A stretch of DNA of 64,000 nucleotides from Paragordius varius (lineage: Eukaryota > Animalia > Nematomorpha): positions 3,038,001 to 3,102,000 of the forward strand of contig OZ176053.1 in assembly GCA_964247055.1 (NCBI GenBank). The letters run 5' to 3'. A program made the position numbers and the translations under genes. The notes below the pieces were generated by a model. It was not told where the DNA came from, did no database searches, and was given only the letters and a program-made list of their open reading frames with translations. Shown here piece after piece: positions 59,101-61,979 of this stretch (position 1 is the first letter of the stretch; each line of letters starts with the position of its first letter).

Positions 59101-61979
59101 ATTAGAACAAGACATGAAAAATCTTAAGATTTTTCGAACAATAAATTCAGTTAACAATAATAAAAAGGACATTAAACTAATTTCCTATATTAAAGATAAA
59201 GATCAACAACTAGTAACTGAGTGGAGTGACATAAGCAATGTCTGGACAACGTATTACAAAGAACAATTTGCACAAAAACATGATTTTGAAACAATAAACC
59301 AACCACCAGCAATTGGTCCTCGACCACTGATAACAACAGACGATGTAAGAGAAGCCTTGGCCAAGATGAAAAATAACAAAGCTACAGGTCCATCTGAACT
59401 CAGCTGTGACATGATCAAAGCTTTACCACAATGCATTATACATTTAACTAACATATTCAATCTAATCTTATCAACAAATCGCATCCCTAATGATTGGTCA
59501 AAAAGCACCATCATACCCATTTATAAAAACAAAGGAGACATACTCGTTTGCTCTTCCTACAGACCACTAAAGTTATTGGAACACCCGTTAAAAATTTTTG
59601 AATCCATTATTGAATCAAAACTAAGATCAATCGTTAGTATACAGGAATCACAAAATGCCTATAAACCAAACAGTAGCACAATTGATGCAATCTTCATTTT
59701 GAGAAGATTGCAAGAGAACTATTTAGCGAAAAATAAAAAACTATATCATGTTTTTATTGATTTACAAAGGGCCTTTGATTGTATCCCCAGGAAGTTGATC
59801 ACATCCACACTACGAGCCAATAATGTAGATGATTGGATAATTAAATCAATAGAAATGATGTACTACAAAACAACAAACTGCGTCAGATTAACACTAACAC
59901 AGCTTTTGTTCCAAACGAATCTGGTCTTCATCAAGGCTCCATCCTAAGCCCTCTACTCTTCATTTTAATAATGGATTACCTAACAAAAAATATAAAACAA
60001 GGCCCACCATGGGAACTTATCTATGCGGACGACATTGTCCTCACCGCAACATCAATGGAAGCATTAAATCAAAAGTACAACACATGGAAATCACACTTGG
60101 AAAAGGGTGGAATGAATATAAATATAAGCAAAACAAAGGTAATGATAACGGGTGAAACTGTATATGAACGACCTAAGTTTCCATGTGGAGTATGTAATTT
60201 AGATGTTAAACTCAATTCAATCCTATGTACATCATGCAATAAGTGGGTACACAAAAAGTGCTCGCTTATAAAAGGGAAACTAATCAATAATGACAAATTT
60301 ATATGTGAATCATGTAAAAATAAAACAATAAATCACTCATCCACTTCCCTAAATTACGTTTATATGGCAGACACCAAAATCGAATTGGTGAATAATTTCA
60401 AATACTTGGGTGATGTCATACATTGCCTAGGTGGAATAAACCAATCAGTTAAATATAGATCCCAACAGGCTTGGGTAAAATATCATCAACCTAAATTTGT
60501 CCTCAAAAATAAACACATATCAGCAAAAAACAAAGGTTTGATTTACAAAGCCGGCATACGTCCCATACTCCTATATGGTTGCGAAACGTGGCCGATGACA
60601 GATTCAATCGAGAAAAAACTAATGAACTTAGAAAAACGGATACTAAATTTATTCCAACCCAATAAGTCAAATTCAAATTTACATCAACTCTACCAAATTG
60701 AACCTTTAAATGTCATGCTCAGAAAAAATAGGCTCAGATATTTCGGACACATCAAACGTGCTCCAGAACAATGGACAAATAAAATTTTATCCCTACATCC
60801 CGAAGGTAACAATCGCAGGGGCAGACCAACATTTAACTGGGGAAAAACAATAAATAATGATTTAAGTGTTGCCAACATTGATGATAACGCCTGGCAGGAT
60901 CGCAAATATTACAGACAGCTTCTATACGGATACAATGGCTAGCCATTACACAAAGACGATACGATACGATACCCATTATTGGCAATATGTGACACCTTTA
61001 AAATAAAAATTGAGCCATTTTTATAAAAAAGTTGACTTATATACAATTTTTTCCATTGATAAATAATATTATAAATTATTCTACAAATAAATTTACCAAA
61101 AAATAAAAAAGAATGATGGTTGTTACTCTTAAACAAGATAGTTGTGAGAGCTAGGCAACTTTTACCGGTTGGATGTCAAAAAACTAATTACTTTTATCTA
61201 AACGGAATGATATGTAATCAGCATAAATTATCTAGTTTATGGGTGCTAATTAAAAAAGGCTTTAGTATTCTGAAAATTTTATAATATAATACAGAGAGTT
61301 TTGGGTTTTCATTATGTTGGCCCAAATGCCGGTGAAATTACTCAAGGTTATGGTGTTGCCATTAAAACTGGAAAAGCCACCCTTCAACAATTCATCGATT
61401 CAATCGAATTGGCTACCAATGATTCTGATTGGGTATATTTTATATAAATATATATTTTTTAAAGTTTTAATGGAGAATCGCTTTTTTAAACTAATAAAAA
61501 ACTTGGCAGGAATTTATTTGTCATTTAATGTTTATTTATGAGTATTTTTTATACAATATGTTTTAATGTCAGACATAATTTAATTTTTTACACTGGTTTT
61601 ACAATCTTTAATTAACTAGCTTATTCTTCTCGAACAGCTAATATTTCTAATTATCACAAAAATATTTTTTTTGCTGGTTCTTAGCATTATGATAAAAAAT
61701 TTAGCAAAATATTTGACGGGAGTTTTATTTTTTAAAATTTTTTTTAAATAAGGTGCGTAAAACATCATCGAAGGTATAAAATTAATTTACCACAATTTCT
61801 TTAGTTAAAATCTTTTGGCATAAAAAAATTAACCAAAAAAGTAATCTGTTAATTTTCACAAAGCAAACATTGAAAATTTGGTGGTTGAAAATAATTTCTC
61901 TATTTTGATATTCATTATATATTTGCATTAGATAAAAAAATCAAGGGAATCACAATATCTGGAATCAACATCCTTGTAG
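49767..61979 (+). CDS. TGR: Thioredoxin-glutathione reductase-like gene (glutaredoxin + high-Mr thioredoxin reductase fusion), about 690 aa; frameshifted as assembled; atypical C-terminus
   Basis: Exons 49767-49862, 49887-49947, 49970-50175, 50253-50344, 51312-51384, 51903-52028, 53051-53340, 54097-54212, 54663-54757, 55287-55414, 55531-55620, 55689-55765, 56082-56322, 56978-57073, 57215-57319, 61295-61432, 61932-61979 (last exon tentative). Motifs: [89 protein letters not shown]. Confidence 0.92.
53547..53815. mobile_element. MITE family 2 copy in TGR intron 7
   Basis: TACCATTTAC / GTAAATGGTA termini; similar to 27008-27360. Confidence 0.8.
54970..55224. mobile_element. MITE family 2 copy in TGR intron 9, left end eroded
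   Basis: Right end gtgaattgtaaatggta and internal homology to 27008-27360. Confidence 0.7.
57455..57513 (+). ncRNA. HDV-like self-cleaving ribozyme (compact, minimal P4) at the RTE 5' end
   Basis: P1 GGGGTGC/GCACCCT with a G1-U wobble; P2 CTCCC/GGGAG; P3 ACC/GGT; L3 TCCGCGT; P1.1 CC/GG; J4/2 C-C-A-A. G1 is the first base after the TSD. Confidence 0.85.
57455..60970 (+). mobile_element. Full-length RTE-clade non-LTR retrotransposon (3516 bp), sense orientation in TGR intron 15
   Basis: 10-bp TSD acccattatt (57445-57454, 60971-60980); (acgat)3 tail. ORFs 57749-59947 ([29 protein letters not shown]) and 59971-60942 ([18 protein letters not shown]) are joined by one frameshift at about 59895 that restores [13 protein letters not shown]. 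Confidence 0.95.

Follow-up and report, generated by a model that had tools for sequence, protein, structure and literature searches.

A thioredoxin glutathione reductase paralog of hairworms that lacks the His-Glu dyad and the Cys-Sec tail

Large thioredoxin reductases (TrxRs) and thioredoxin glutathione reductases (TGRs) are classic cases of an electron relay through three centres, and in worms that live as parasites TGR serves as a drug target. In these enzymes, as in glutathione reductase, NADPH reduces FAD, and FAD reduces the disulfide of the CVNVGC motif. In TrxR and TGR, the His-Glu dyad of the other subunit then catalyses the interchange with the C-terminal Cys-selenocysteine (Sec) pair of that subunit, which reduces thioredoxin (Trx) or the glutaredoxin (Grx) domain. 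In this work, we describe a TGR-like gene in a 64-kb stretch of the genome of the hairworm Paragordius varius (contig OZ176053.1, positions 3,038,001 to 3,102,000; this whole stretch is called here the window). In our moderately confident reading, it belongs to a hairworm-specific TGR paralog that has lost the elements of the relay while its NADPH/FAD/CVNVGC module is kept by purifying selection, and from which electrons are predicted to leave at the CVNVGC/FAD centre or through a heterodimer.

The closest described relative is canonical Sec-TGR, represented by proteins of another hairworm, Gordionus (XP_065314703.1 / CAK9295272.1), and of Schistosoma mansoni (2V6O/2X8C). It shares with the paralog the Grx-TrxR fusion (interrupted by a one-base frame break in the assembled window gene), the CPYC, GGGSGG and CVNVGC motifs, the NADPH segment, the interface domain, and the positions of introns. 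In contrast, the paralog has neither the His-Pro…Glu dyad, nor the Gly-Cys-Sec-Gly tail, nor a selenocysteine insertion sequence (SECIS), and its so-called guiding-bar region is degenerate. Cys-tailed large TrxRs, such as the insect SCCS and nematode GCCG forms, are Sec-free members of the same family, as the hairworm paralog is; however, their tail carries a redox-active Cys pair and their His-Glu dyad is retained, and the paralog has neither.

Two sets of laboratory enzymes offer further comparisons. C-terminally truncated TrxR1 retains FAD reduction by NADPH at normal rates and displays CVNVGC-dependent NADPH oxidase and juglone reductase activity (PMC2268967). Such molecules, known as SecTRAPs, resemble the hairworm paralog in having an intact FAD, NADPH and CVNVGC centre and a missing Sec centre. 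They differ from it in being made in the laboratory or by electrophiles and in keeping His472 and Glu477, whereas hairworms carry the loss in their genomes, where it extends to the dyad and is shared by two lineages. The TXNRD1 guiding-bar mutants W407A and N418A/N419A showed lower disulfide reductase efficiency and gained Sec-independent reduction (PMC10840350). The same region is degenerate in both defective hairworm copies; nevertheless, these mutants are point changes engineered into a Sec enzyme, individual residues correspond only approximately, and even the canonical Gordionus TGR does not conserve W407.

The dyad and the C-terminal centre of the window gene

The gene lies on the plus strand, begins with an ATG at 49767 and extends at least to 61432. 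Exon-wise comparison with TGR proteins allowed 16 exons to be modelled, comprising three Grx exons followed by FAD, CVNVGC, insertion, NADPH-domain and interface-domain exons (Table 1). Of the features expected of a TGR, the FAD and NADPH sites and the CVNVGC redox disulfide are all present. A preliminary examination of the same DNA, made from the letters alone (the sequence-only reading), had described these motifs and the Grx CPYC as intact. CVNVGC, GGGSGG, the NADPH segment and CPYC are indeed found, but the Grx coding sequence is broken in the assembly at ~50038-50042.

Exon 16 is where the gene departs from its family. It translates to exactly the 46 residues quoted in the sequence-only reading, matches TrxR and TGR through FIDSI, and then reads ELATNDSD at the position of IGIHPxxxE. 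When searched with phmmer against all PDB chains, residues 1-31 of 44 align to TrxR and TGR (best E 4e-9), and the colinear alignment continues through the catalytic motif without a gap, placing IELATNDS under the canonical IGIHPTDA. The His is thus replaced by Ala, the Pro by Thr, and the Glu five residues on by Asp, which bears out the earlier claim that the His-Pro…Glu motif is missing. In a wider alignment with TrxR/TGR orthologs, 20 canonical sequences read IGIHPxxxE, the Gordionus ortholog reads IEMNVPESQ, and the window gene reads IELATNDSD. The NCBIfam model TIGR01438 (TGR) covers exon 16 at profile positions 420-456 of 485 only, ending just before the His-Pro motif. Neither an IHP nor an HPxC piece occurs on the strand of the gene across the whole window, and tblastn with a canonical C-terminus finds exon 16 as the sole match in the window. 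Because the His-Pro…Glu positions are colinear with exon 16 and substituted within it, no exon further downstream can bring the dyad back.

The C-terminal centre is missing as well. No Cys-TGA, GC-TGA-G or Cys-Cys tail stands in a plausible exon context in 61433-64000; the sequence-only reading had made the same observation over a shorter distance, and it holds to the end of the window. A scan with Rfam models at E up to 5 found no SECIS in window positions 48000-64000; up to position 64000, neither a Gly-Cys-Sec-Gly (or Cys-Cys) end nor this element was thus found. The same scan at the same limit found no SECIS within 4 kb after the canonical Gordionus TGR (locus L002, 27930-27998; 27999-31992). 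Negative SECIS scans therefore carry little weight alone, and the hairworm SECIS is either atypical or missed by the filters.

The 3' end of the gene allows more than one model. Translation may simply read through the donor of exon 16 to a nearby stop, or exon 16 may be spliced to the last exon proposed in the sequence-only reading (both in Table 1). The open reading frame (ORF) and the AATAAA claimed for that exon are present; nevertheless, it is one of several acceptors, as 15 further phase-0 acceptors with a T/C-rich tract exist downstream of exon 16, and its resemblance to a canonical last exon is not significant. Neither the read-through end nor the candidate exons carry a Cys pair, and the Gordionus ortholog shows such a short, Cys-free end to be the predicted state of this paralog. 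Two other proposals for this region were rejected. The segment 61908-61979 was considered as a decayed canonical last exon ('IIYLH-stop-IKKS' against 'IYTSLTVKKS'), but its protein and DNA scores were reached by 215 of 300 and 124 of 200 shuffled sequences, respectively. The likeness of VYF in the read-through tail to IYL was dropped as homology evidence, being explained by the donor sequence.

An ortholog and a canonical paralog in Gordionus

The 46-residue exon 16 was searched against 1.84 billion representative proteins. One full-length match runs past the motif without His-Pro, a 650-aa protein (P0003, identical to XP_065316171.1) of the horsehair worm Gordionus sp. m RMFG-2023, and no relative closer than Gordionus was found in this search. 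Most other matches without His-Pro are exon fragments read into introns. Among the remaining proteins, a TrxR-like fragment of 399 aa (P0052) has LGIQSTCSEE for IGIHPxCxE and a non-canonical C-terminus; it may be an independent instance, from some other organism, of a large TrxR without the His.

A second annotation of the defective Gordionus gene, CAK9295316.1, has an identical C-terminus, IIEMNVPESQ followed by IYLNAPV and a stop. At this locus (L001), the penultimate exon ends PESQ|GTTTTT, and the last mini-exon, located 890 nucleotides (nt) on, begins ATATAT (Ile-Tyr) and stops after 7 codons. The next gene lies 5 kb beyond this mini-exon, and up to that gene the locus holds no SECIS, no IHP exon and no Sec exon. 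The suggestion of the sequence-only reading that the true last exon might lie beyond the window is thus unneeded to account for the missing centre. A short open piece within the 7-kb first intron of the same gene reads IHPTN, exactly as the canonical motif does (L001 20038-20091; tblastn E 2.6); it is probably a chance match.

The search for a canonical paralog, proposed together with the sequence-only reading, succeeded in Gordionus. A canonical TGR (CAK9295271-3 / XP_065314703.1) is located on the same chromosome, ~0.53 Mb from the defective copy, so that a Sec-TGR and its defective paralog coexist on one Gordionus chromosome. Its penultimate exon ends TIGIHPTNSE|GTTTTT, and its last exon begins ATATAT and reads IYTSLTVKKSSGQAVEQAGC-TGA-GGT-TAA, which gives a Gly-Cys-Sec-Gly end. 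The two genes have the intron at the same position, use the same donor and begin the last exon with the same two codons, and the defective gene can thus be regarded as a duplicate of Sec-TGR with a decayed tail. Both proteins exceed the TIGR01438 cut-off of 475.85 bits (588 for the defective P0003 and 655.5 for the canonical P0153), but the match ends at profile position 457 of 485 in the former and at 483 in the latter. By the family model the ortholog is a TGR; judged by two defining features, the dyad and the C-terminal centre, it would not be a working TGR. This carries a warning for annotation, as the name given to the Gordionus protein is 'thioredoxin reductase 1, cytoplasmic-like' and its score satisfies the TGR family model, yet it is predicted not to work as a TGR.

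The relationship of the three hairworm genes was assessed in a maximum-likelihood tree of 22 TGRs, in which the window gene was entered as a joined translation with X at the frame break; this translation was also used for the alignment and for the ratio of nonsynonymous to synonymous substitution rates (dN/dS). The canonical Gordionus copy branches outside a pair formed by the window gene and the defective Gordionus copy (SH-aLRT 98 and 97). The members of this pair share 64 derived columns in all, among them a one-codon insertion (KTGKxTL against KVG-ATK), a change of Gly to Glu just before the lost His, and, eight residues earlier, a change of Lys to Leu. The tree makes the window gene and the defective Gordionus copy orthologs. 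Both the duplication and the onset of the loss are therefore older than the divergence of these two worms. The paralogy and the shared loss are shown, and in our reading it was a canonical selenoprotein TGR that was duplicated before Paragordius varius and Gordionus separated.

All three hairworm TGR genes carry a long low-complexity insertion after the CVNVGC helix (window 53057-53200; P0003 ~200-260; P0153 ~222-300), which, being present in each of them, predates the duplication. The start of the insertion contains a Cys/His cluster in both defective copies (DRCPKCKC in the window gene and DDQHCHH in Gordionus) and none in the canonical copy.

Selection, decay and possible function

Constraint was measured at 191 alignment columns that are near-invariant in the 20 canonical TGRs. 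The window gene keeps 168 of them and the defective Gordionus copy 167 (about 88%). The changes are concentrated in the C-terminal segment, which includes the guiding-bar region, the dyad and surrounding residues: in the window gene 13 of 28 columns are changed there and 10 of 163 elsewhere (Fisher p 4e-7), while the corresponding counts for the defective Gordionus copy are 11 of 28 and 13 of 163 (p 7e-5). The dN/dS check advised earlier was carried out by region with the NG86 method, comparing the window gene with its Gordionus ortholog. The values are 0.23 for the whole gene, 0.16 for the FAD/NADPH part, 0.2-0.3 for the interface domain, and 0.45, the highest, for Grx; as dS is saturated (1.3-2.3), these figures are upper bounds. 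This pattern is what would be expected if the NADPH/FAD/CVNVGC module were still used and the parts of the C-terminal relay were not, and it is unlike long neutral decay. Since the catalytic His and the Sec tail are lost yet selection persists in two hairworm lineages, the paralog probably does a different job than canonical TGR.

A probable course of events can be outlined. After the duplication, one copy would have lost the His-Glu acid-base dyad, the guiding-bar residues and the Gly-Cys-Sec-Gly tail, whereas purifying selection would have maintained its Grx fusion, its FAD and NADPH sites and its CVNVGC dithiol. In its product, NADPH would still reduce FAD and CVNVGC. Because the dyad and the tail are missing, neither Trx nor the fused Grx would be served by the usual route, and the usual arm would provide no onward electron path to either. 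In our preferred reading, electrons would then exit directly from CVNVGC/FAD to small acceptors, such as quinones, other low-molecular-weight oxidants or O2, in SecTRAP-type chemistry; alternatively, the subunit might pair with canonical TGR and lend its CVNVGC to the tail of the partner. The Grx domain could act alone as a glutathione-dependent glutaredoxin, and a new site might include the Cys/His-rich start of the insertion (CPKCKC in the window gene, HCHH in Gordionus). More tentatively, the paralog may be a natural, long-conserved 'SecTRAP-like' enzyme of hairworms, serving either a new acceptor (a quinone, a metal or metalloid, or the controlled production of oxidants) or, in heterodimers with canonical TGR, as a half-subunit that spares selenium. 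Of such a reductase, the window gene displays the sequence prerequisites only.

Several observations weigh against this retained-and-repurposed reading, and most of them equally favour its main rival, according to which the gene is a recently dead pseudogene in this species while the ancestral paralog was possibly functional. We consider this rival unlikely. Grx exon 3 contains a one-base break: TVPNIF is in frame from exon 2, while KPHIGGCDD and the sequence on to exon 4 are one base off. The break lies at ATAAACC, where one extra A would give FIKPHIGG. CPYC, TVP and GGCDD are all present, but in the assembly the break parts the beginning of the Grx from what follows; the Gordionus ortholog has an unbroken Grx. 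A genuine break would end translation from 49767 at 50068-50070. In addition, no last exon can be recognised, as nothing in 61433-64000 resembles a canonical last exon better than shuffled sequence does. The window lineage is moderately faster than that of the defective Gordionus copy (terminal branch 0.88 vs 0.62; 75 vs 48 unique changes, p 0.015), dN/dS is highest in the Grx part, a 3.5-kb LINE (long interspersed nuclear element) sits in sense orientation within intron 15, and none of the sampled words of 61200-62100 was found in the RNA-like sequencing runs of the species. The argument from constraint draws on two species. On the biochemical side, enzymes of this class are normally crippled in thiol-disulfide interchange once the active-site His is lost, and because of this loss the CVNVGC centre may be slow even for small disulfides.

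Against recent death stands the fact that about 2 kb of coding sequence contain no lesion other than this break, in a genome of 25% G+C where stops arise quickly. The break is a -1 change in a homopolymer A-run, which is a common assembly error, and it thus represents either such an error or a very recent disabling mutation. The later exons and splice sites are all intact, and the retention of invariant sites equals that of the annotated Gordionus gene. Multiple lesions, lost splice sites and a dN/dS near 1, by which a pseudogene would be recognised, are not seen in this gene, a state with which very recent death would be compatible. The sequence-only reading had left the choice between a repurposed flavoprotein, for which it named an oxidase-like or scaffold role among the possibilities, and a decaying paralog. 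The paralogy has since been established, and an old, selected and repurposed paralog is favoured as fitting better than plain decay; local signs of decay persist nevertheless, namely the frameshift, the faster branch and the unrecognisable last exon.

Improbable, in our view, is the stricter alternative that the protein is an obligate heterodimer partner, whose NADPH/FAD/CVNVGC half feeds the dyad and Sec tail of canonical TGR, leaving one working site per dimer at half the selenium. Such a role would explain why the N-terminal half is strongly conserved and all parts acting in trans (the His, the Glu, the guiding bar and the tail) are lost, and the canonical copy does coexist in Gordionus; however, the idea is purely inferential, and the paralogs are only about 53-56% identical. 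Very improbable is an artefact of the gene model, with another exon 16 and a terminal Gly-Cys-Sec-Gly exon with its SECIS beyond 64000: the window does end 2.5 kb past exon 16, hairworm introns can reach several kb and no last exon has been recognised, but the window holds no second copy of exon 16, the Gordionus locus has, as far as the next gene, neither exons of this kind nor a SECIS, and its last exon starts with Ile-Tyr like the canonical one and stops after 7 codons.

A search of one library of papers found none mentioning Nematomorpha together with thioredoxin reductase. A paralog without two of the relay elements that selection has nonetheless retained in a phylum of parasites would amount to a natural experiment on the NADPH/FAD/CVNVGC module alone, whose stand-alone chemistry is known so far only from damaged or engineered TrxR. 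If the gene is only a dying duplicate, the matter is routine.

Gene structure and surroundings

The window is AT-rich animal DNA with 20-35% G+C. The boundaries of exons 5-16 were taken as the best donor/acceptor pairs against the defective (P0003) and the canonical (P0153) Gordionus proteins. The 15 introns that were checked are all intact and of the GT-AG type; from exon 4 to exon 16, where every intron is of this type, the open frame comprises 590 codons. The donor of exon 16 resembles the other donors of the gene.

Table 1. Coordinates of the modelled exons, the possible 3' ends and the associated elements in the window
Feature	Coordinates	Strand	Remarks
Exon 1	49767..49862	+	Start codon, Grx N-terminal part with CPYC; aligns to Gordionus P0003 residues 11-34
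Mini-intron 1	49863..49886	+	24 nt, GT-AG; in-frame TAG if retained; same codon as Gordionus intron
Exon 2	49887..49947	+	Grx
Mini-intron 2	49948..49969	+	22 nt, GT-AG; Gordionus intron at the same place
Exon 3	49970..50175	+	Grx C-terminal part and linker; 1-base frame break ~50038-50042 in A-run
Exon 4	50253..50344	+	FAD-binding GGGSGG
Exon 5	51312..51384	+	Best splice-site pair
Exon 6	51903..52028	+	Redox-active CVNVGC; donor equally possible at 52016 or 52019
Exon 7	53057..53340	+	Lineage-specific insertion (CPKCKC), then conserved FAD-domain sequence
Exon 8	54097..54212	+	Best splice-site pair
Exon 9	54663..54757	+	NADPH-domain GxGxxA segment; preceding stretch 1 residue shorter than in Gordionus
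Exon 10	55287..55414	+	NADPH 2'-phosphate arginines
Exon 11	55531..55620	+	Best splice-site pair
Exon 12	55689..55765	+	Best splice-site pair
Exon 13	56082..56322	+	SIGD segment; second small insertion
Exon 14	56978..57073	+	Interface domain begins
Exon 15	57215..57319	+	Degenerate guiding-bar region, with AMYKIL
RTE-type LINE, intron 15	57440..60940	+ (sense)	3.5 kb; long apurinic/apyrimidinic endonuclease (APE) and reverse transcriptase (RT) ORFs
Exon 16	61295..61432	+	IELATNDSD(W) in place of IGIHPxxxE; GTATAT donor at 61433, phase 0
Read-through option	61433..61447	+	VYFI, TAA at 61445-61447; AATAAA at 61493-61498; sequence read
Candidate last exon	61932..61979	+	Short ORF to stop; AATAAA 41 nt past stop; listed among 17 phase-0 acceptor candidates; unconfirmed

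The two mini-introns occupy the positions of Gordionus introns of ~7 kb and 3.3 kb (L001 16884-23860 and 23921-27215), and this positional match supports their being real introns that have shrunk. A third mini-intron or a programmed frameshift was considered as a means of mending Grx exon 3 and was rejected, since the exon offers neither a GT…AG pair at a fitting distance nor a slippery site.

Comparison of the window with the Gordionus flanks revealed no synteny; the matches, including those of the minus-strand RT-like frames named below to the flank of the canonical locus, were to transposons only. The 5' end of the LINE in intron 15 matches HDV-like ribozymes (57455-57516; Rfam drz-agam-1 and HDV, E 0.6-5), although below threshold, with 23.5 bits for drz-agam-1 against a gathering score of 37. 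Further RT-like frames are located on the minus strand at window positions 63400-64000 and 4130-5240.

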